Origin: Epithemia pelagica
Taxonomy: Eukaryota > Protista > Bacillariophyta
NCBI GenBank assembly: GCA_946965045.2
Contig: OX337235.1
Location: forward strand, 248,001 to 312,000
Reading direction: 5' to 3'
Length of the DNA stretch: 64,000 bases
Shown here: positions 1 to 12,485 of the stretch, one piece after another
Layout of the letters: every line of letters starts with the position of its first letter
Position numbering within the stretch: the first letter of the stretch is position 1
Position numbers and translations under genes: made by a program
The notes under the pieces: generated by a model
Told to the model about the DNA's origin: nothing
What the model saw: only the letters and a program-made list of their open reading frames with translations
Databases searched by the model: none

Positions 1-180
1 GAATTTGAACGTCCATACCACTCTCTCTACATTTCAAAGAGAGAACACGGTGTCACGCACAGAATGGTTGGGATTCGACCAACCTGCTTCGGATTGGTTT
101 GCTTGGGGTTCGGAAACAAGCACAACATGGTAGGGAATGGCCTTTGTGGATCGGAGAAATATGATACCACCCACACTAAC

Positions 181-475
181 TGTTGTACGATGCAAGGATG
201 CCGTCAGCTTCGTCGCTTTTGTCGTAGATGTAAAACGTAATTTTACTTTACTATCTTGACTATCTCCAAAGAATGAGCTCTCGTCTTTTTCGCCTTGCTC
301 GTCTTTGGTTTTCCGTATTTCACCACGTCAGCGAACGTAACGCGCTTACCTTCTCGCTTGCGTGATTGTTCGTGACTCCTTCGATAAGTAGTTCTTGTCA
401 TTGTCCCAGCTTGGTCGCCGGGTGGCTCTGAGGACTCGTGGATCATTTTTTTCGTCTTCGTCATTATTTCCAACA
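181..475 (-). repeat. 3' LTR of copia element 1 (295 bp)
   Basis: TGTTGTACG...TTCCAACA. A purine tract GAGGAGCG precedes it on the minus strand. It differs from the reassembled 5' LTR by 8 substitutions and one 4-bp indel. Confidence 0.95.
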
Positions 476-3400
476 CGCTCCTCATGAGTCGAGGAGTCGC
501 ACGGGGAGCCTTGCAGGGAATCGATGGGCTTGTGTCCGAGTAATACGTCTCTGAACTTGATGAAAAGACTCCCTTGTAGTGGTTTTGTGTAAAAATCCGC
601 TAACATTTCCTCCGTTGGGCAGTAATGGATGTCGATATTTTCTTGTTCGATTCGGTCTTTTGTAAAGAAATATCTGATTTCCACATGGCGCGACTGCTTC
701 CCCGCTGAAGCTCTTCCGTTTTTCTCTAGTTTGATTGCACTCTGGTTGTCCTGGGCGAATTTTGTGCTTGCTATCTTGTATCCTTGGGCCTCGAGGAATC
801 GTTTGGCCCATATCGTGTTTGGGAGGTAGTCACTTGCACCCACAACCTCGGCCTCAGTCGAGCTCTTAGTATTGAGCTTCTGCTTTCTTGATTTTGCGAT
901 GATAGCACCTCGCCCAAGGGACATTACACCGCCTGTGTGGCTGCGCATGTTGTCATGTACGGCGAATGATGCGTCGACCCATGTCTTGAGATGGGGTACA
1001 TTGTCTGCTCCGACAATGTATTCCAATTCTTTGGTAGCATACAGATATTGGAGCACTCGTTTCAATTTGGCCCAATCGTCGACGGTACATTTGGCAACTC
1101 GGGTGCACAAGAACGCGATGGCCGTTTGGATGTCTATACGGGCACGTTGTGACAGGTAGAGTAATTTTGCCACGATACTGTGAAATTTGTCCTTCTTTTC
1201 TTTGCTGAGCATCGGTGAATTCTTCTTGATTGTGAAAAGTCCTTTCCTCGCAGGTGTTGATGCTCCTTGTGTGACATCCTCGCCAAACATGTCGATTGCT
1301 TCGTCGATGTATTGTGGCATGATGATGCTGACCGTGCCGTTGTCGTTGATTGTAATCTTCATTCCCAAATAGGTGTGTTCTTTTCCTCTACACACCAACA
1401 TCTTCCCGAATTTTGCTTCGATTGCTGCCACGACATCTTCGATTACCTTCTCTTCCACGTGCGATGCTTTCAGATCATCCACGTACCAGGTTACATTGCA
1501 TTGACGTCCGTTGATCATTTTGTTGGCCACGCATGGGTCGTACGGGTTTAGTTCGAAACCCATCTCTTTCAGCGTTGTGGAGAACAACTCGTACCACAGT
1601 AGTGCAGATTGAACGCATCCATACAGTGCTTTGTTGAGTCGTACGTGGAGTACCTTGGTTTTTCCTTCCATGACGACGAACTTTTTGTATTTCTCGTTGA
1701 TCTGGCAGAAGATGTCCACTACATCACCGGTGAGCTTCATTAATACGTAATCGCGCATAAAAGCATTAAGGTATGCCCCAGCGATGTCAGCGGTGATGAC
1801 TTTCCGTCGTTCAATTGCGTCAATGATCAGTGACATGATCAGGGTGTCTGCTGACAGGGCTGGTGAAGCAGTCTCACTTTTATTGTAGTGTGGTTGCTGG
1901 GACCGTCCGTCCGCGCACGATCGTCCCTTGATCTTGCCACAGCGTTTCTCTTTGATCACGTTGACTGATCTGAGGGCTGCCTTCTTCTGTTGTGCCGTAA
2001 GCTTTGATGCGTCCTGGGGATCGAATGTATCTTGATTATCCAATTGTGTGAATTCCTTGAGAAGTGCGTCTATGGCTTTTTGACCATGTTTCTTGATGCC
2101 TGCTTGGGCAGACATTTGGGTGAATATGAAGTGGGCCACCAAGGAATGGATCGGTTTCCGTTCGATCACGTTGGTTGTCGCGTGACGGATCACACGTTGG
2201 AGAAATTGCATATGCATGTATGATGTGCTACCGTCCGCGGTGTCCATTTGGTGGTCAAGTCTGTGACTGTAGGAGCGTGTCCGGCCGCTCCTCAAATTGT
2301 ACTCGCGTTGAGGCATGTCGTCCTCGGACATGGCGGTTGCTTCGCCATCGCCGTCTTCATCGTTATGCTCGTCATAATCGTTCGCTCCTTCATCTTCATC
2401 CTGATACTCTTGTGCATGGTGCGCTCCTTCATCTTCGTCGGGTTCATTCGCTCCTTCATCTTCATCCATTTCACTATGCGCTCCTTCTTCTTCTTCAATT
2501 TCACTATGCGCTCCTTCTTCTTCAATTTCCCCGTGATCATCGTCGTCGTCGATATCATCGTTGTTGTCTTCATCGTCTGTTGTTGAAACCATTGGTGGCT
2601 CGTCGTCATCATCTTCATCTGATGCCGGTGGTTTGTCACTGCTTGACTCGACATCGTTTTCGTTGGGATCAGAGTCGTCGCTGTTCCCGTCGTTGGGTTC
2701 TTCTTCCGGTTCTTCGTCCGATTCGTCGTCATTCAAAAGGTCATCGTTGTCGTTGGGTACCTCATCGTTGTCGTCAATGATGGGGATGTTCGGGGCCCAT
2801 TCAAAAACCAGCTCACCATCAATGAGTGGTTGGTCTTGCTGTTCAGCCAATTCTTCGACACGGTCGATTACCGCTTGTGTAATGGGGAGCTCTGTCCACT
2901 GTTGGCGTGTGACGCGAGCACCTGTGTCTAAGGATAGGAAGTAGTAACTCCCTTGGGTGTTGCCAGTCGGGTTGAGTGCAATGGCGCCAATGGTTCGCGG
3001 GGCTGCTGTGTTTGTTCTTCGTCTTTCTTCAAATATTTGGGCATAATGGCCGAATTCGATGCGCATGTTGTTAAAATCCGGGTCAGGTAGGCCCGTCACT
3101 ATTTTCCGTGGGCTCATGGTGGTGGACACGCCCTTTCTGCTTGGTAGTTGGCTGAGAGTGCGGACGGCATGCGCCACGATTTCTCGCACTAGTAGGGACG
3201 GGTAGCGTCGGTACGGTAGGCCATGTACTAGAGCTGGGACCCTCTCCTTAATGGTCCTGATGGATTGCTCAACTTGTCCGACATGGTCGTCAGCGGCAAC
3301 GATGTTTGATAGGACGGGGAGAATTCTCTGTTGGATTGGTGCAAATTCGTTATCTGCGTGGAAATCCGTGACTTCGAAACCTCTGGCATGATACATGTTG

Positions 3401-5549
3401 ATGACGTCCTTAATTTCCTTCTCGAGAGTTGCTTTGCGTCGATTGGAGATTGCTGCAACGGTGCGGAAATGGAGGTGCTTGGAAATGGTGTGACAGAAAA
3501 TGTGGCCTTGGACGTAGAAATTGTCCGCGCATATCGTCACGCGTCGGTGTTCGTTCTTGATTTTGGTAGGGATGTCCGTTGGAACTACTTGTGGTGCAGC
3601 GGGTGTCGGTTGCTTTACGGTTTTGCCTTTGATGGTGGCGGGGTCTGGTCCGTAAATTTTGAGGGCTTGTTTGGCATCTTCGGGGGTGACGGGACAGTTT
3701 TGGACGACATTGTTTGCCAGTGCGTCGAGGAAATCGCGTTGGGAGGGTCGACCGAGTTGCCTGTAAAGAGTACGGGCACGAGGAGGGTCGACCGAGTTGC
3801 CTGTAAAGAGTACGACGATCCGCTCCTTCGACCTCACGGGGGGAATACCCAGACGCACTATTGAGAAAAAGATAAGGGGCAGAAGTGGAATTAATAGAGT
3901 TAGTGGGATCGTTCACATCAAAATAATAGAGACCCATGGGGTTCTCTTTGAAAAGCATTACCGAACCATCCTTCCGGTGCACAGCAATGGCGGAGGCACC
4001 AGCAGTGTCCATGGTGACACGGCACCGCTGACGGACAGCGGCAAGGGATAGGATGTTGGCCAGAGATTGTGGGTTGAACCATACTTCGCCAAAATTGGGG
4101 ATGTCCCCAACAAGACGAGAGATTTGGGAACCGCCGTTGGTGTAGACCGTGAGGGGGGAGGCGGCAGGGCGGATGTTTTGGAGCAAGGTGGCATTTCGGA
4201 AAACGGACACTGTGGACTGGCTGTCCAACAAAACCCAAGAATCGGGTACAGCAACATGGCGTGATTGCGAGAAACAACAATCAAAATGCAGAAAGGTGAC
4301 GTTGTGGACGGGACCATGGCTCTGGAGCATGGTAACCCCAGTGGCTGCCTCGTTGTTATCGGCCCGATGCGGACACTGGCTTGCATAGTGACCAGGACCC
4401 TGGCAATGGAAGCAGATGATGGCTTCATGCAGAATTCCGTCGAGGCCAGGGATGGGAGCGGTTGTTGTTTGGGCAAACTGGAGCCCACTGCTGGTTGAAG
4501 ATTGTCCTTGTTGCTGATTTTGTGGTTGGCGTTTGTGGTTGGCGGGGTCCGCGATAACTCACCAACATACCGTATGCTGCCGTAACGTCGACGGGGTACT
4601 GATCCGTCCCACGGGTGAATTGGTTCTCCAATTCGATAAGAAGATTTCCAAACCGTTTCCTATCCGCTCCCTTCAGGAACTGGATAGCCAGGGCACGATC
4701 ACGACTCATGCGTTTCTTCGTTTCGGAGGTTGTCGTGACGTCGGGGTCCAAATATTTGACAATGAGATCCTGTGATCCTTTGTCTACTCCAACTGAGCCT
4801 CCATAATGTTCAAGGACATCGATGTTTTCCTTGAATTGATGCAGGTAATCCGAGAGAGCTTCATCTGGTTGCTGCCGGTGGAGGTAAAAATTGGTGTACG
4901 CGTCGTTCAGAGACGCATACCCATATCGTTTTTCTTCAAATTTGTGCCTGATCCCTTTGATCTGGGTCAGCAACCAAGCACAATCGCAAGCTAGTCGGGA
5001 GGCGTCATACTTTTCTAGTCCTTGTAGTTTGGCTTTCATAGCCTCGCTGCACTGCCCCCAGATTATGGCATAGGCTGCTTGCAAATTACTCTTGAGTATT
5101 TCGCATCGAGTAACATAGGCGGCGACTTGTTTCTCGAAGATTGCAATCTTCAAACGACTCTTCTCTTCGTCTGGGAGATCGGCTGGCTCTTGAACGGACG
5201 GATTCTTCAAATCTCGGGTAAGAACCACCATGTCGCCCGCATGCTTGAACGTCTTCGCGAAGTGTTCCTCTAATGCTTCCAGTGTTCGGGTGAACTGTCG
5301 CTTGTCATTGCATTCATGGAAGACTTGAAACACGTGGCCGTTCATACCTTCCGCGTTGCCCTTGAATAAATTACTACTCGTGTGGCCTCCTCTGCCTCCA
5401 CGACCTCCGCGTCCACCACGTCCTCTTCCTTTTCCACGGCCTCTTCCTCCTCGGCCTGGACCACCAGCACCACGCCCTTCAGGCGTAGTACCTGGCGAAC
5501 TGGGGGCGCCGTCCTGGCTGGACGGGTTGGACGCGTCCGAACTGCTCAT
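346..5549 (-). pseudogene. Copia gag-pol polyprotein broken by two frameshifts
   Basis: Gag 4425-5549 (RGG-rich N-terminus). CCHC knuckle CFHCQGPGHYASQC and protease LLDSQS lie in the 3410-4330 frame. Integrase, RT (ADIAGAYL, WYVDD) and RNase H (WVDASF, STEAE, QDNQSA, LADFYTK) lie in 346-3858. The frameshifts coincide with tandem duplications at 4519-4544 and 3742-3818. Confidence 0.93.
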
Positions 5550-6192
5550 CCTTCTCTGCTAAGAGATATCGGATGTTGTTCTTGCCTCGTCAAACGTCCT
5601 GACCACTATCCGTGTGGACGATTACTTGGTATGCGGTGACTCGGGCAACGACACCCGTGCCGTCACGAATGGTTGGTGCTTCTCCGACGTGGAGTGAAGC
5701 GGGATTGATGATGCAAACTATGTCTCCCCCTCGGAAAGCCCTCCTTTTCTTGTGGATGATGTACCGCTTCCCTGAAACCGCTGAGGTCCACAAGGTGCAG
5801 CCACTTTTCAATGCCGAGAGTTCCGCTCCTTCGTTCTCCAAATAAAAGGTGGTATCGCCGTCCGACTCTTGTCCTCGAGATTGTTGGTGACGAATGACTC
5901 CAACGACTTCCACGCTTGAACTGGCCACACTGGATGCAGTGGGCGATGGCCGTTGATACTTGTTTCCTCTCTGCGCGGCCGCCGGTTTCTTCTCCGACTG
6001 GCTGCCTTCTTCACTGTCGCCTGTCTCCTACCCTCCGGGCTGGGACTTTGCCCCAGTGGCAACCCGTGTCGCTTCAACGATGGGGACTTCCCGGATGCTC
6101 TTGATTCGGGCAAGCACTTCTCTCTGTCGAGTTGTGAGTTCTTCGAGTTCTTGGATGAGTTTGTCGATCTCTTGCTTGTTTGGGCTGGACAT
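5479..6192 (-). pseudogene. Extra ORF (ORF0) upstream of gag in copia element 1: coiled coil plus KOW/SH3-like domain, two in-frame stops
   Basis: Track ORFs 6028-6270 and 5590-5928 are in one frame, with stops TAG (6028) and TGA (5590). Read-through gives MSSPNKQEIDKLIQELEEL...GDIVCIINP...GTGVVARVTAYQVIVHTDSGQDV*RGKNNIRYL. Confidence 0.6.
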
Positions 6193-6255
6193 GGAAAATG
6201 CGTTGATGCGCTTGAAAAGACAGTTTGTAAGATTTCGTGTTTTCTTTGGAGATAA

Positions 6256-6371
6256 TGTTGTACGATGCAAGGATGCCGTCAGCTTCGTCGCTATCGTCGT
6301 AGATGTAAAACGTAATTTTACTTTACTGTCTTGATTATCTCCAAAGAATGAGCTCTCGTATTTTTTGCCTT
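6256..6371 (-). repeat. 5' LTR of copia element 1, part adjoining the internal region
   Basis: Aligns to 181-295. Confidence 0.93.
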
Positions 6372-6503
6372 CAATACCAGCTAACGGTTTTTAGCGGTTT
6401 CCCGTGTACACGTGCCTCCACGGCCAAGTTTCGCGCTGCCCTCACCAAAATGCCGACTGGCGACCTTAAACATAAAATATAGGATCCGAATCCGACTTTC
6501 ATT

Positions 6504-8246
6504 TTGTTAAGAAATAAATGTCCTTTCTGTCGCAACACCATCCACTTTCACCTCATCAATTCTTGCCAAAAGCTCACTCGGAAGCCAACATCCAATGGAG
6601 AACTAATGACGAACGACCCAAATGCAGACGATCAAGATGGTTGTTTGACACAACAATCAAGCACAACTCCTTTGATTCAGATTGACAACTACAAAAGACG
6701 TTCTTTGTATCCTAAATCCACCATGTTTCGGAGTGTACCGGACATCAACAAGCCGCCTTTCTACGTAAAGAGACTCGACGATCACCTCCGCATCGGGTCG
6801 TTCGTCCACATCCATCTTCCCGGACAGAAAGACGATACGACGATCGCACGCATCCACTCTCGAATCAATGCCTCCGGCCTCAGGTTTGTGTTGTTCCCTC
6901 CTTTGTTTCCCCGCTACAATCTAAATGACCAGTCTCACCCCAAACTGCCCAAGCACAATTACACCAGGGTGATGCTGGGCCTCGGTTCACGAAACACGGA
7001 ACTGTACAAATCGTCCACTACATTTGACGTCGTAGAAGATGCCTCCTCCGTTATTTCCCACCCGGCTTTTGTATTTTCCCTACATGAATTCAAGTCTCCC
7101 AAGAACATTTGGACTGAAGGCCTTGACAATTTCTTCTTTGTTCGTTTCCGGATGCCCATCATTGACAGTGATCCTCCGGTTGGTTGTCTACATCCATTAG
7201 AGGAGAAGACAAAGCTTTGCTTTCCGAACGAGCACGCTTGTCGTTTCATTGTGGATAAGGCAGTTCGTCCCCCAAGATGCTTTCACCAGTCATCTTTTGT
7301 TGGCTTATTCCTTCTTCGCGAGGCTCTCGTGAAATTGTTGAACAAATCTTCGGGCCAGGCCGAGGAACACGAAGTGACTGGCGATACCATTGGCCTCGTA
7401 CCTACAGAAACCTGGACCTATATTGTCCAGCTTTGTCGAATCCAAGGCATAGACATCCATACAACCAAGAGTTCTGCGTCCTATCTCGATATCGACCCTA
7501 AGTTCACCAGGAAGAAAGTAAAGATGAGCTACCCTACCACCATTATTCGGTTTCGGAGTTCTGACGACCTCCAGTTCTTACGAGGCTTGCTTGGATTCGG
7601 CAGTACTTATGGATGTACCGATCGCAAACCCACTCTTGCCGACGGTCCCAATGGAACTTCCCTCAAGCCCGAGCACCGTGTGACACTTGTGAAGGGATCT
7701 ACATCCGAGGAAAAAGAAAATTTCAAGGTCAGATCTCGTGACCAGCGAGTTGACCTTTGTTGGTCCGACTTTCATTGTCGCGTTGTAGTGGGATACGAGC
7801 AGTATCAGTACTCCCTTGACCACAAGGGAAAGCTCAAGAATGACCCTCCCACTGAGGACCTCAAGAACATTCTCCAAGGAACACCAACATCATCTGACGA
7901 TAAGACTGACACGACCGATGTCTACCAACATGAACCCTCCGACACCACCGAGAGTGATTCCGAGCCCTCTAAAGCACCAAGCCCTGCTTCACCTAACAAA
8001 ATTGCCAAGTCGACTGCCCAAGACTCCCCCAGTAGCCGTATCAAGATCGGCCACCAGTTCACTGACTGGGACGAGCAAAACGTGTATGAGGTCATAGCAG
8101 TCAATCGTAACGAGAATGGCCCGTTTGTTGTGTCTCGTATTATCGGCGGAGTGTTCTACGACCACGACCTCCCCATGGATCAACAAGAGATTCATAAATG
8201 GGAAGATGCTGACGAGGTCCTTCTCCTAATTCGTCAGTTCAACTAG
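6504..8246 (+). CDS. Transposon-borne protein with an N-terminal BAH-like domain (580 aa ORF; true start may be 6606)
   Basis: Uninterrupted ORF inside the TIRs. Ordered BAH-like motifs: RIGSFVHI, IARI, ELYKS, ISHPAFVFSLHEF, DNFFFVRF (about aa 95-216). The remainder is unrecognised. Confidence 0.7.
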   Translation: MLRNKCPFCRNTIHFHLINSCQKLTRKPTSNGELMTNDPNADDQDGCLTQQSSTTPLIQIDNYKRRSLYPKSTMFRSVPDINKPPFYVKRLDDHLRIGSFVHIHLPGQKDDTTIARIHSRINASGLRFVLFPPLFPRYNLNDQSHPKLPKHNYTRVMLGLGSRNTELYKSSTTFDVVEDASSVISHPAFVFSLHEFKSPKNIWTEGLDNFFFVRFRMPIIDSDPPVGCLHPLEEKTKLCFPNEHACRFIVDKAVRPPRCFHQSSFVGLFLLREALVKLLNKSSGQAEEHEVTGDTIGLVPTETWTYIVQLCRIQGIDIHTTKSSASYLDIDPKFTRKKVKMSYPTTIIRFRSSDDLQFLRGLLGFGSTYGCTDRKPTLADGPNGTSLKPEHRVTLVKGSTSEEKENFKVRSRDQRVDLCWSDFHCRVVVGYEQYQYSLDHKGKLKNDPPTEDLKNILQGTPTSSDDKTDTTDVYQHEPSDTTESDSEPSKAPSPASPNKIAKSTAQDSPSSRIKIGHQFTDWDEQNVYEVIAVNRNENGPFVVSRIIGGVFYDHDLPMDQQEIHKWEDADEVLLLIRQFN

Positions 8247-8297
8247 TTTGCAATAAGATATATAAGAATTTAGTGTCGTTCCATCAAGTGCCTCTCA

Positions 8298-11200
8298 TTA
8301 CTCATTATTTAGATTCTCCAGATCATCATTCTGATCCAATATACGCAACAGGTCCACAGTTCTGAGATTTGCTTCTTCCGGAACTTGTCCGGAAGATTGT
8401 CGCGGCGATTTCTGTTTCGGAGGGAGACCAACTTCCCAGTCATCGACCACTGCCCCCTCCAAGTCCTCCAGTTGAATTGGTCCGTCCTTGTTTGACAAGC
8501 CATACTCCAGTGTCCCCCCATTGTCACGAATCCATTCATCGAATTTTTCTATCTCATCTTGCGACCGATCCAGTTGTTGTTTTATCTCTTCCTCAGTGGT
8601 TCCAATGAGGAACACCATTCGGCGCTGCAACCATCGAGCCATTGACCGCAACCTACTCTTCTCCGCCGTTCACCAATTCCCCGCACCTCCTCTCTCCTTT
8701 TAAACAAACTGTTAGAGGCTATAACACATAGGAGGTCAGCCGTCAGTTGATGGAGCCCTCAGTCAAATACACCGTTGTGGATTGAACTTACCTTCCCAGC
8801 CTTGTTGACTATGCAACCATAAGTTACGCCAATGCAATAGATATTCCATGCAATGGCCACTACCCAGCATATGGGCGTAGTTTGATATCCCCTCGACTCC
8901 ATACAATGAGCACCAATCTCTGTAGAAGTAGTCGATGTCTTTCTGAAAAGCAAAGATCTCACTGTCCGACATTTCATGTCGGACGTTCACTTTCTTCAGA
9001 CCCTCCCTGAAATAGTAGATTGCAGACTTAAAGAGGGCGGCCTTCTCGTTATCCACAAAGCAACAATCAATCAACAGCTCGAATTTGATGAGGAGCTTTC
9101 GAATCCTCACGTTATCCATTGTAATGTCTCCAATCTTGCAAGTTTTGGTGTCGTATGGCACTGTCCATTGGGTTGGTTGGTCCTCCGATCCCAGAATTGT
9201 TGAATTCATAATGCCATTGACCTTGCTGACAAATGCAGCACATCGGTCTTCCTTTGTTGTTGTTGTAGGAGGCATCCACTCCAATTCAACGCCGTCCTTT
9301 GGATTGATAGCGTTGTTCATCCCCGTCTTTAGCACCATGGTCAGAAACTTGATCCCCATTCGATTCTCGAGATGGAGCAAGCATGGAATGGCGTCCATCA
9401 TAAGCACGATGGCAATACGCTTCTGGGAGGCCTTGGCATTGTCCAGACATTCCAATGCTCTTTTATAGGACCATTCCTTGACTCTCTGATTCTATAAACG
9501 ATCCTGTCGTTCCTCCAACGATCCTGTCATTTGGAGTCGACGCAACCTCAAATCTGAAGTGACCAGTCGAGAATACTCCTGCCTCTGCTCCTGTGTCGCC
9601 CGGTTCAAGTCAAATTGGATCGAAAGGATATCGTTGGCTTGCATCTCCGTTGCAACAATATTAGGATCGTCTTGCATCGACAGTTCGCTCTGCTCCTCAA
9701 GCAAAGCAAGGTCTTTAGCGATTAGAGGCAGGGGACCATTACCGAAGTCGTTGACCTCTTTCTTCAAGGTTGCAGTATGCTCTTCAGTGAGCATCTTTAC
9801 ATGGCGGCAAATCCAAGATGGGTCATGATGATGATCCAATTGAGTACAGGTCTTGCACTTGTCTGGTTTTATCCCCGACGGTTGGCACAGCTGTCCACTG
9901 TGAATGGCACATTTAGAACAGGGATAAGTATGCTGCTTGGCGGCACCCCCTCGTCCACTGAGTTCCCAATCACATTTCATATCACAATTGAAGCAGAGTG
10001 TAGGTTTCTTTTTCTTATGTGCCTTGGATACAACTCCAACGGCTTCCTTGATTTCTTCCAAGGTTCTTGCAAAAACTCCAACCACGTTCTCAGTCGTTTC
10101 TGGCATTGCCACACATCCAACGGGAAAGACTGATTGTTGTGACTGCGCATATGCGTTGGATGGATCATTGAATTTGATACCAACCAAGGTGTGTGACAAA
10201 TTCTTAGTAAATTGTGCGCCATCAAGACTGGCAGCGATTCGTATCGACCTCACCACGGCCTCGGAGTTTAGAAGATGACCAGCCTTCAGAAGACAAAGGA
10301 GTACATCGGCTGCACGAAAAGCAACACCTTCGGTGCCATTTTTCGAGCTTGTCTTCATGATGAAGGGACAGATGTTGCGTCCAAAGCTCTCTACCAAAGC
10401 AGCGTAGGCTTTCATACAACCAGAACTAGGTAGAAGCGTCTTCTCTCTAGGAACACCATCTGTCTCTACGGAACGCAGTAGTTCGATACCTTCGTAGTTC
10501 AGTACACCACCCCCCCCCCCCCGAAGATCCATTTGTTTCAGTACACGGTGGGGGGTATAGATATTCTGCCTTACATAGTCTCGAAAGACTGAGTAAGAAC
10601 ATTGCTTGAGTTGCCCTTCGTGGACGCTCTCGTCGAGACACAACTCTGCGACTTGGCCGTAGAAATACTTCAAAGCACGACTATTACTACTCCGGATGTT
10701 CTTGGTTGCATCTTCAATGACACTCCTGATATGTTGTACGAGGGTGTCTGCCTGGTCATTCGATGTGACACAGGTGGGTAGACGACGACTTTTGCATGTA
10801 GCACAATTTCGTTCGAGTTCTTCTATCTTCTTCTTAGCATCTCGCAGCTTGTTTGATTCGTTGCGAAGCTTCTTGGTTTGAGTCTCTACTTGTTCTTCAG
10901 ATTTTCTAAGACGTTCTTTCAACAGTCTCACTTCTTCCTGTAGTGATAACTCAGAAAGGGAGATTGACGGGTTCAATGGTTGTATGGGCACTGGCATATC
11001 TACAGAAGAATCAACGGCCATCGTAACAGTATTGTCTTATTCAACAGGTGCTTCAGACTCGCTTGATTCCGAATCATTTAACTGATTTCCTTGACTTTCT
11101 ATGGGAGTAGAATCTTCTTCTTGTTCAGGTGGGCCTGTTCCATCATCGACCAATGGTTGAGGTTCTGTTTGCTCTACAGACGAGATTGTACGGTTGTTAT

Positions 11201-11972
11201 CAACGTCATCTTCATCATCCTCTTCTTCAATGTCGGAGAGAGTAGCACTTGGTCCCATAACAGGAGGTTGAAATTGACTTGTAGGTATGGGCTGGGGGTC
11301 ATTTCGCCTCTGCCGTCGATCTTGTCGTCGTTTCTTCTTGTTGATTCTTGGGGGTGGACCATCAGTATATCTATGGGCCGTTGGTTTAATTAAATTACGG
11401 TGCTTGGCAATACATGTGTAGGGACCCTTTTTCCTCTTCCGATTTACCTTGAGCTTTTTGCCAGACTTTTCATCCCAGTCAGCGTTGTCACATTGACCAC
11501 AGAAGAAAAAATCTTCATCCTCCCATTCTTTCAAACGGTTAGATCCGAAAACAGAGCAGGGGACCCAGTCTTCCTTCTTGAAGTCTTCGATGATCTTGTG
11601 GATGCGGCGGAGCTCGAAAACAGTGTCTTCAACGGGTGCATTATCTTCTTGGCGTTGGCTTCTTGTTTGTTTGTTTGGAGATGCCGCAGAGGCAGGAGGT
11701 GGAGGACCGCCTCCTCTCTTTCTCGAGCCACGAGAGGGCTGTCTCCGCGAACGACGTTGTGGTTGTAAGGGAGTTTTAGCTGGTTTCTTCTTGTTCTTTG
11801 TGACTTTCGTTGAGGTGGAACTGATTGGATCACCAGTATTTTCTTTGTTGGCAGAGGTGCTGCAATTCTCTCGCAATGATGAGGGTAGAAATAGGTCGTT
11901 GCTTAGGGGGCAACAGGCGCAGGGATCCATGGTTCCTGTTTCGTTTGCTTGGTGAGAAGAGCATGCAGACAT
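8298..11972 (-). pseudogene. RAG1/Transib-like DDE transposase, decayed
   Basis: ORFs 11037-11972, 9492-11021 and 8763-9455 share one frame, with stops TAA (11037) and TAG (9492). Motifs in RAG1 order: ASLDG (D about 10221), CDMKCDWELSG (D about 9981), YPCSKC, CLLH, NYAHMLGSGH, SQQGWE (E about 8793). A GT-AG intron at 8719-8791 is followed by ASNSLFKR. The 3' part is frameshifted. Confidence 0.8.
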
Positions 11973-12485
11973 CGTTGTTTGTTGTCTCTCGGGGATAGGG
12001 ATGTAATCCTTATAATGGTATCGAAATCAAGTCAAACGCAGTTGGACGAGATGGTTGGTTTTTGGAAAATTGGATGAGACTAATGTGCGATTAACATAGA
12101 TTTACTGTACTGGTATGAATGTTAGTGTTGGTGCGTCGGCTGAAGTTCCATAGGCCGCTCATTTTTTGGTGGGTACCATCCGACGAAAAAAGGGGCTGTT
12201 CTTTTAGGAGCCAAATTTGGGAACCTATTGGATGTCTGAGAGCGAGACCAACGGCGGGGAATGTTGCTTGGATGACCATTGGATCATTTCCGACCGTTGG
12301 GGTCCAATAGATCCGTTGAAACGGGTCCAAGCTAGGGGCTACCCTAAATCTCCAAAATTTTGGCTGATGGTAGTTTTTCATTTAACAAAAGGGCTTCTCA
12401 CTATTTGTGTCATAGTAAATGAAGGCGTGTCTGGCCACGTCTCGGCAAGGCCGGCTACGACCGTTTACACCGCTAGCTGGTATTG

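Follow-up and report, generated by a model that had tools for sequence, protein, structure and literature searches.

A diatom two-gene DNA transposon with a predicted RAG1-like transposase core and a convergent BAH-domain partner

Is a pair of convergent genes in the genome of the diatom Epithemia pelagica a transposon, and if so, how close does it stand to the RAG recombinase? The question is raised by positions 6372-12485 of a 64,000-nucleotide stretch of contig OX337235.1 (assembly GCA_946965045.2, positions 248,001 to 312,000), the whole of which is called the window below. A first-pass annotation made from the letters alone had proposed a RAG1/Transib-like transposon with a tail-to-tail partner gene. 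Our analysis makes it highly probable that the locus is a copy of a mobile diatom two-gene DNA transposon with a RAG1-like DDE (Asp-Asp-Glu) core, that this transposon forms a separate lineage of the CACTA-Mirage-Chapaev-Transib (CMCT) assemblage, and that the partner gene, whose product carries a BAH domain, is integral to it. Cut-and-paste DDE transposons with a RAG1 fold, such as this one, are already known from the CMCT assemblage; what appear to be undescribed are the diatom lineage, its target-site duplication (TSD) of 1 bp and the conserved convergent BAH-domain partner.

A whole-genome DNA search returned four full-length copies of the 6114-bp unit (contigs C8, which holds the window, C17, C18 and C7). 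Each aligns over query bases 1-6114, and pairwise identity is 98.1-99.3%. All four start and end at identical bases, CAATACCAGC...GCTGGTATTG, amid unrelated flanking sequences, so that the unit and its bounds as first annotated can be accepted to the base. In the window copy, an inverted-repeat search finds 17-nt ends (6372-6388 and 12469-12485) that match at 94%, and 30 inverted pairs comparable to these occur in the same 9 kb, i.e. at chance level. The ends are therefore proven by the four full-length copies (about 98% identity) with exactly these boundaries and not by the 17-nt repeat alone. The terminal inverted repeat (TIR) of the three other copies is 26 nt long with 25/26 positions matching (CAATACCAGCTAACGGTGTWAACGGT) and carries two AACGGT half-sites per end; that of the window copy is apparently shorter because of a 1-bp insertion at 6388. 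The element termini read CAATACC...GGTATTG. With at least 70 matches in the genome for the transposase and likewise for the partner gene, this is an abundant family of autonomous-type cut-and-paste DNA transposons in E. pelagica.

The insertion had been described as precisely placed in a copia long terminal repeat (LTR), and the uninterrupted sister LTR at window positions 181-476 supplies the empty site: the joined flanks of the window copy match it at 95.6%, and the alignment runs across the junction with a one-base overlap at base 296. The empty LTR reads GCCTT/GCTCG and the occupied one GCCTT-element-TGCTCG. The duplicated T on either side (Table 1) had been overlooked in the first-pass annotation. 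The bases that flank the four copies are t/t, a/a, t/t and g/g (left/right), and a 1-bp TSD is also present in 7/7 divergent relatives with CA ends (L021, L027, L028, L032, L033, L036 and L039; ends found by script). Counting the four copies and those divergent relatives whose TIRs begin with CA and were detectable by the script, this amounts to 11/11 elements with 5'-CA ends, to which the empty site is added. The termini of the relatives are CAATACC, CAATAGC, CAATAGG and, in one sub-family, CACTACG; since all of them start with CA, we regard CA...TG termini as conserved. Two further loci were left out of the count because their ends are uncertain. For L026 the inverted-repeat candidate is 14 nt long with flanks c/t; in L031 (contig C13) the best inverted repeat starts with CGTAAGG and has flanks a/a, so either its actual end escaped detection or the CA rule is not without exceptions. 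The family thus integrates with a 1-bp stagger, and its mobility is shown by four near-identical copies together with the empty site. Our literature search found no report of a 1-bp TSD in DNA transposons. That the locus is a host gene pair instead of a transposon is ruled out by the TIRs, the TSD, the multiple copies and the empty site.

The retrotransposon that received the insertion is of the Ty1/copia LTR type and lies on the minus strand (window 181-6371 and 12486 to about 12662), with RVT_2 within 346-3858 and a gag-like open reading frame (ORF) at 4425-5549. Its LTRs are 95.6% alike, from which it follows that the DNA transposon arrived later than the retroelement.

The transposase gene has two exons and encodes about 1,240 amino acids (aa), laid out as an N-terminal Cys/His finger, a predicted coiled coil and the catalytic core. 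The window copy is a pseudogene with two in-frame stops, a 9-bp insertion and a 19-bp deletion. In the copies on C17, C18 and C7 exon 1 is open over 1084-1086 codons, and genomic contigs from public runs carry undamaged versions at the lesion sites; the lesions are thus specific to the window copy, in which the transposase gene is dead and the partner gene is intact. The intron first proposed at 8719-8791 is real: exon 1 ends ...HSQQGWE, followed by G/GTAAGT, and past the AG at 8720-8719 the frame resumes with ASNSLFKR...RWLQRR, yielding GWE-ASNSLFKR. Among 19 paralogous transposase genes, 9 read QQGWEAFNS... without interruption and the other 10 have GT[A/G]AG exactly there. We take the intron as confirmed because paralogs without it have continuous coding sequence at this position. 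The stop codons of the two convergent genes lie 51 bp apart, as had been noted (partner 8244-8246, transposase 8298-8300). All diatom motifs quoted in the first-pass annotation are present in the sequence; the RAG1 strings set beside them are taken as putative counterparts only.

Two side observations concern this gene. The intron after QQGWE/G is present in ten paralog lineages and missing in nine (L021-L040), which means that it was gained or lost within the transposon family. The N-terminal Cys/His motif, for which there is no Pfam match, precedes the coiled coil and is, judged from its residue pattern, a possible TIR-binding zinc finger.

The putative catalytic residues stand out in an alignment of 45 cores. 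The D in S[LI]DGA is invariant and the D in NCDMS nearly so; C-x2-C is invariant, and further Cys/His residues are conserved, as are C..H in PCILHLENR, H-x5-H in NYxHMxxSGH and the E in SQQGWEA. An AlphaFold (AF2) model of the 617-aa core has a mean predicted local distance difference test score (pLDDT) of 89. Along the model, a pre-RNase-H region is followed by an RNase-H domain with both D residues; next come a zinc module of the C(2)C type, a long insertion of helices, a second zinc module with H(5)H and, last, the E. When it was searched against the PDB with Foldseek, ranks 1-45 were all RAG1, BbRAGL (the amphioxus RAG1-like protein) or HzTransib, with a best E of 4.7e-8, and Hermes came next at E 0.04. 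VIA-align gave the same picture: RAG1 was matched with Z 19.4 (364 residues aligned, root-mean-square deviation (rmsd) 4.2 Å; model residues 84-617 against RAG1 residues 533-975), BbRAGL with Z 18.4 (367 residues, 5.7 Å), HzTransib with Z 14.0 (290 residues, 5.6 Å) and the P element with Z 12.4 (269 residues, 5.1 Å), and the next best matches were unrelated proteins with Z of at most 6.8. The RAG1-like core proposed earlier therefore stands at the level of the fold, and the enzyme is predicted to be an RNase-H-fold DDE transposase built like RAG1.

The product of the plus-strand gene (ORF2) had been called a partner that is not RAG2. In the window, ORF2 is 98% identical to that of the C17 copy and free of stops, and the public gene model P0048 has the same 546 aa. 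A Pfam scan of ORF2 gave no match, and a word-index search found few homologs. Its predicted structure has a pLDDT of 71 overall, with higher values in the folded parts and mostly 75-95 in the middle domain. The N-terminal part is a BAH fold. In VIA-align, 18 BAH entries head the list, with the ORC1b BAH-PHD structure at Z 10.5 (119 aligned, rmsd 2.7), the polybromo BAH domain at 10.2 and EBS at 9.9; Foldseek reports E of about 1e-4 and a probability of 1.00, and a BAH cluster is matched in the ESM Atlas. The C-terminal small barrel resembles Tudor, chromo, KOW and CAP-Gly barrels with Z 5-6, a weak likeness that can be read for fold class only. Invariant Arg, Lys and His residues are numerous in the middle domain, and no structural match in VIA-align covers this part (about aa 255-470). 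A Kelch propeller was not among the structural matches of ORF2. The partner is thus indeed not RAG2-like.

The language-model neighbours of the middle domain are clusters with RAG1_RNase_H, Transposase_21 or Plavaka (fragments of CMCT transposases, score 0.94). Alignment of the ORF2 family with the transposase family by hhalign detected no relation, and because of this a degenerate transposase-derived middle domain is kept as an unverified lead.

The two genes travel together. In 20/20 fetched paralogous loci, a long, open ORF2 homolog (32-56% aa identity) lies tail to tail with a long open transposase gene. An ORF2 profile picked up the same convergent partner in Fragilaria crotonensis as well as in two metagenome contigs, and the partner in Seminavis robusta is linked by transitivity to one of these (29% identity over 369 aa, E 6e-37). 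Pairwise distances of ORF2 and of the transposase are strongly correlated across 17 elements (r = 0.91; Mantel test, 0 of 5000), and among four recent copies the ratio of nonsynonymous to synonymous polymorphism (pN/pS) is 0.22-0.35 in ORF2 and 0.10-0.31 in the transposase gene. Both genes are under purifying selection, and the convergent partner is an integral, co-evolving component of the element. The first-pass annotation had named copies lacking the plus-strand ORF as the sign of a one-off capture; all 20 fetched loci keep it, and this objection therefore fails. Outside these loci, the exceptions are a metagenome relative (L044) and three copies in a repeated block on contig C16.

Table 1. 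Coordinates in the window of the element, its ends, its two genes and their parts
Feature	Position	Strand	Basis and remarks
Element	6372-12485		copy of ~6.1-kb DNA transposon, 6114 bp
Left TSD copy (T)	6371		empty LTR is one T shorter at the junction
Left TIR, 5'-CAATACCAGCTAACGG...	6372-6398	+	two AACGGT half-sites; 1-bp insertion at 6388
ORF2 (partner gene)	6606-8246	+	546 aa from first ATG; conserved sequence from near ATG at 6723; intact
BAH-fold domain of ORF2	6747-7232	+	aa 89-250 of 587-aa frame; VIA-align, Foldseek, ESM Atlas
Conserved middle domain of ORF2	7245-7892	+	~aa 255-470; invariant basic residues; family alignment
C-terminal small beta-barrel of ORF2	8022-8243	+	aa 514-587; SH3/Tudor/chromo-like, weak, fold class only
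Transposase exon 2 (ASNSLFKR...RWLQRR...)	8298-8718	-	frameshifted here by 19-bp deletion near 8695
Intron, G/GTAAGT...AG	8719-8791	-	sequence and intron-less paralogs
Transposase exon 1	8792-11972	-	ATG 11970-11972; stops 11037-11039 and 9492-9494; 9-bp insertion near 10507
RAG1-fold catalytic core	8793-10631	-	predicted model, fold matches, residue conservation
Core codon D (ASLDG)	10221-10223	-	
Core codon D (NCDM)	9981-9983	-	
Core codons C(2)C	9918-9920 and 9909-9911	-	
Core codons C..H	9381-9383 and 9372-9374	-	
Core codons H(5)H	8871-8873 and 8853-8855	-	
Core codon E (QQGWE)	8793-8795	-	
N-terminal Cys/His motif C..FG..R...FFC..C...Y.C.A.H	11400-11558	-	family consensus; putative zinc-finger DNA-binding module
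Right TIR	12460-12485	-	repeat search and copy alignment
Right TSD copy (T)	12486		flank comparison

Sequence searches delimit the family without tying it to a named one. Pfam scans of all ORFs in the window, of an intact transposase and of 45 family members yielded nothing beyond coiled-coil and low-complexity noise, with a library that does not include the newer RAG1 models PF26100 (RAG1_RNase_H) and relatives. Searches of the PDB sequences, among them RAG1, BbRAGL and HzTransib, with phmmer and two family profiles gave no relevant match, with no hit at E up to 10 for phmmer and a family profile. Transposase_21 (PF02992) matched neither the 45 family members (hmmscan) nor any part of the whole genome. 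A word-index homology search returned 47 matches, none of which has a Pfam domain, and an exhaustive profile search retrieved 4,307 cluster representatives at E up to 0.001, of which 671 remain when the limit is set at 1e-30. The named members are diatoms only: Fragilaria crotonensis, Seminavis robusta and Epithemia clementina. The literature searched, on diatom Transib/RAG1-like or CACTA-Mirage-Chapaev (CMC) elements, on 1-bp TSDs and on Lanisha, holds no account of the family that we could find, and as far as this literature goes the earlier impression of an undescribed family was right; Repbase and Dfam deposits lay outside its scope, so an unpublished consensus there is possible.

Where does the element belong? 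According to Kojima (2025, PMC12730594), C(2)C and H..H motifs are common to the whole CMCT clade, whose descriptors are a TSD of 2-5 bp, H(3-4)H, 5'-CA...TG-3' termini and a RAG1-like fold; some members carry extra genes, and for one fungal lineage the HHpred match is RAG1. The diatom family resembles this clade in the CA...TG termini of the family itself and of seven divergent relatives and in a predicted fold like that of RAG1 and EnSpm; its C-x2-C is invariant, with H-x5-H as the histidine pair. We base membership on these sequence motifs, termini and fold. It differs from the clade in that no Pfam member model (Transposase_21, Plavaka) matches, and a convergent BAH partner is unreported for the listed lineages. 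Because RAG1 lies out of reach of every sequence and profile search made, and because a plant CACTA model fits the fold equally well, a distinct lineage within the CMCT assemblage, and not the Transib superfamily, is the safe placement. Within the assemblage, a lead from protein-language-model space puts the family nearest to RAG1/Transib: for two distant members, the neighbours are RAG1 clusters and invertebrate clusters that bear RAG1_RNase_H (score 0.96), with no Transposase_21/CACTA among the sets reported from the top 100.

Several observations weigh against this reading. The diatom TSD of 1 bp falls short of the 2-5 bp of the CMCT clade, and H-x5-H is one residue longer than H(3-4)H. There is no sequence-level link to any known transposase in Pfam, PDB sequences or PDB profiles, and the fold cannot tell RAG1/Transib from CACTA, since predicted structures in the ESM Atlas give equal template-modelling (TM) scores by query: 0.53-0.55 for RAG1 clusters and, over 413 aligned residues, 0.55 for a plant cluster with Transposase_21 and DUF4218. 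As to the partner, the metagenome relative L044 (an ENA contig with 343 bits to the transposase profile) has no convergent partner, and the three related copies on C16 have no match to ORF2. A complex prediction for the transposase core and ORF2 aa 85-470 scored 0.00, which is evidence neither way on binding. A search for public RNA runs turned up only three DNA-type runs, all from one study. Finally, the hairpin mechanism and the chromatin-reading role suggested below would follow by analogy with other systems.

Some details of the exceptional copies may be added. The downstream neighbours in L044 are on the same strand and do not match the ORF2 profile. The C16 copies lie at about 957-1008 kb (loci L005 and L007-L013), two of them separated by 13.5 kb, with the third roughly 32 kb beyond; their transposases have 75-76% aa identity to the family, and their match is confined to element bases 1738-4572 and 5683-6114. 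Possibly these are elements that were truncated and lie within a segmental repeat.

The alternative that survives best, although we consider it unlikely, is that of a divergent CACTA/EnSpm-type (CMC) element. Two proteins are common in that group, so the layout and the likeness to RAG1 would be unremarkable. It is true that RAG1 fits the core no better than the plant Transposase_21/DUF4218 model, that C(2)C, H..H and CA..TG termini are common to the whole CMCT clade, and that no CMC transposase is among the PDB matches, so that the PDB lists may favour RAG1. Like CACTA/EnSpm with its TnpD and TnpA, the diatom transposon is a two-protein element. However, CACTA elements have CACTA termini, a 3-bp TSD and Transposase_21 and are not known to carry a BAH domain, whereas the diatom family, with termini CAATAC... 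and a 1-bp TSD, has none of the first three; Transposase_21 failed to match in the 45 members and in the whole genome, and the language-model neighbours are of the RAG1/Transib type. The second protein of CACTA elements is encoded on the same strand as the transposase, via alternative splicing, and is not known to be convergent or a BAH protein.

Less probable still is a deep branch of the Transib/RAG superfamily that has its convergent two-gene layout in common with ProtoRAG/RAGL by descent. In its favour, no structures match better than RAG1 and BbRAGL, language-model features place RAG1 nearest among the named families, the core shares the predicted architecture and the order D, D, C(2)C, H..H, E with RAG1, RAGL and Transib, and the two genes converge between TIRs as they do in ProtoRAG. 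Against this, the TSD is 1 bp and not the 5 bp of Transib and RAG, and the termini (CAATAC... or CACTACG) have only the CA in common with the CACNGTG heptamer. The diatom core has H-x5-H in place of H-x4-H and a longer helical insertion, and no homology to RAG1 or Transib was detected by sequence or profile. The partner is BAH/Tudor-like, whereas RAG2 is a Kelch propeller with a PHD finger, and the host is a diatom and not an animal. HzTransib scores below RAG1 and only slightly above the P element, so that the Z-score ranking carries no clean phylogenetic signal. Of the membership in the RAG1/Transib clan first proposed, the fold thus holds, and a specific kinship is not supported: CACTA fits equally well, profile homology was not found, and the TSD and termini of Transib fail. 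The ProtoRAG-like layout likewise holds as a conserved convergent two-gene trait (20/20); since C(2)C and H..H are common to the CMCT clade and the Transib hallmarks fail, the likeness to ProtoRAG is more probably one of analogy than of homology.

It is extremely improbable that the plus-strand ORF was captured from the host on a single occasion and rides along without any part in transposition: BAH is a host-like chromatin domain and ORF2 is missing in L044 and the C16 copies, but ORF2 has the same convergent position in 20/20 divergent elements and in other diatom species, its frame is widely intact at a pN/pS of 0.2-0.35, and partner conservation, co-divergence with the transposase and purifying selection rule such a capture out. 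Kolobok, P and hAT were also considered as superfamilies and rejected on their TSDs (TTAA, 7-8 bp and 8 bp, against 1 bp), motifs and structural ranking; RAG1 outranks both the P element (Z 12.4) and Hermes (E 0.04 in Foldseek), and the PDB lists hold no Kolobok structure.

For the distinct CMCT lineage preferred here, a mechanism can be suggested by analogy with RAG1, Transib and hAT. The transposase would bind the paired AACGGT sites in each TIR, perhaps by its N-terminal Cys/His finger. The element ends would then be nicked and the element released via hairpins on the flanking DNA, and the 3'-OH ends would be joined to target strands staggered by one base. Catalysis would be of the DDE type, and, as in RAG1, a zinc site of the C2H2 type would brace the RNase-H fold. 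If the partner is a co-factor at all, it would most likely read chromatin or nucleosomes as an accessory subunit and so tether or license the transpososome, a proposal for which we see the balance as even. Such a role would be functionally analogous, not homologous, to that of RAG2 with its PHD finger. The proposed combination of a reader module with a DDE recombinase recalls other chromatin-tethered systems (RAG2 PHD-H3K4me3, chromovirus chromodomain integrases, Ty5-Sir4 and LEDGF-lentiviral integrase), from which the diatom system differs in that its reader, with BAH and barrel domains, is encoded by a gene of its own. A bolder version, which we hold only tentatively and think rather doubtful, would make the family a superfamily-level sister of Transib/RAG with the BAH/Tudor-like protein as an obligatory chromatin-reading subunit, i.e. 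an independent re-invention of the RAG1-RAG2 logic outside animals, combined with integration at a 1-bp stagger, for which there would be no precedent.

Vertebrate V(D)J recombination goes back to RAG1-fold transposases, and to our knowledge all known two-gene RAG-like transposons come from animals. A large and still active-looking diatom family broadens the range of designs known for this enzyme class, takes the CMCT clade outside the TSD lengths published for it and provides a natural experiment for asking why recombinases of this sort take on a partner that reads chromatin. Thousands of uncharacterised relatives are present in public data, the scanned family proteins belong to no Pfam family, and the family is probably mis-annotated or unclassified in diatom genome annotations. 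Copies in which both frames are intact are a possible transposon tool for diatom genetics.

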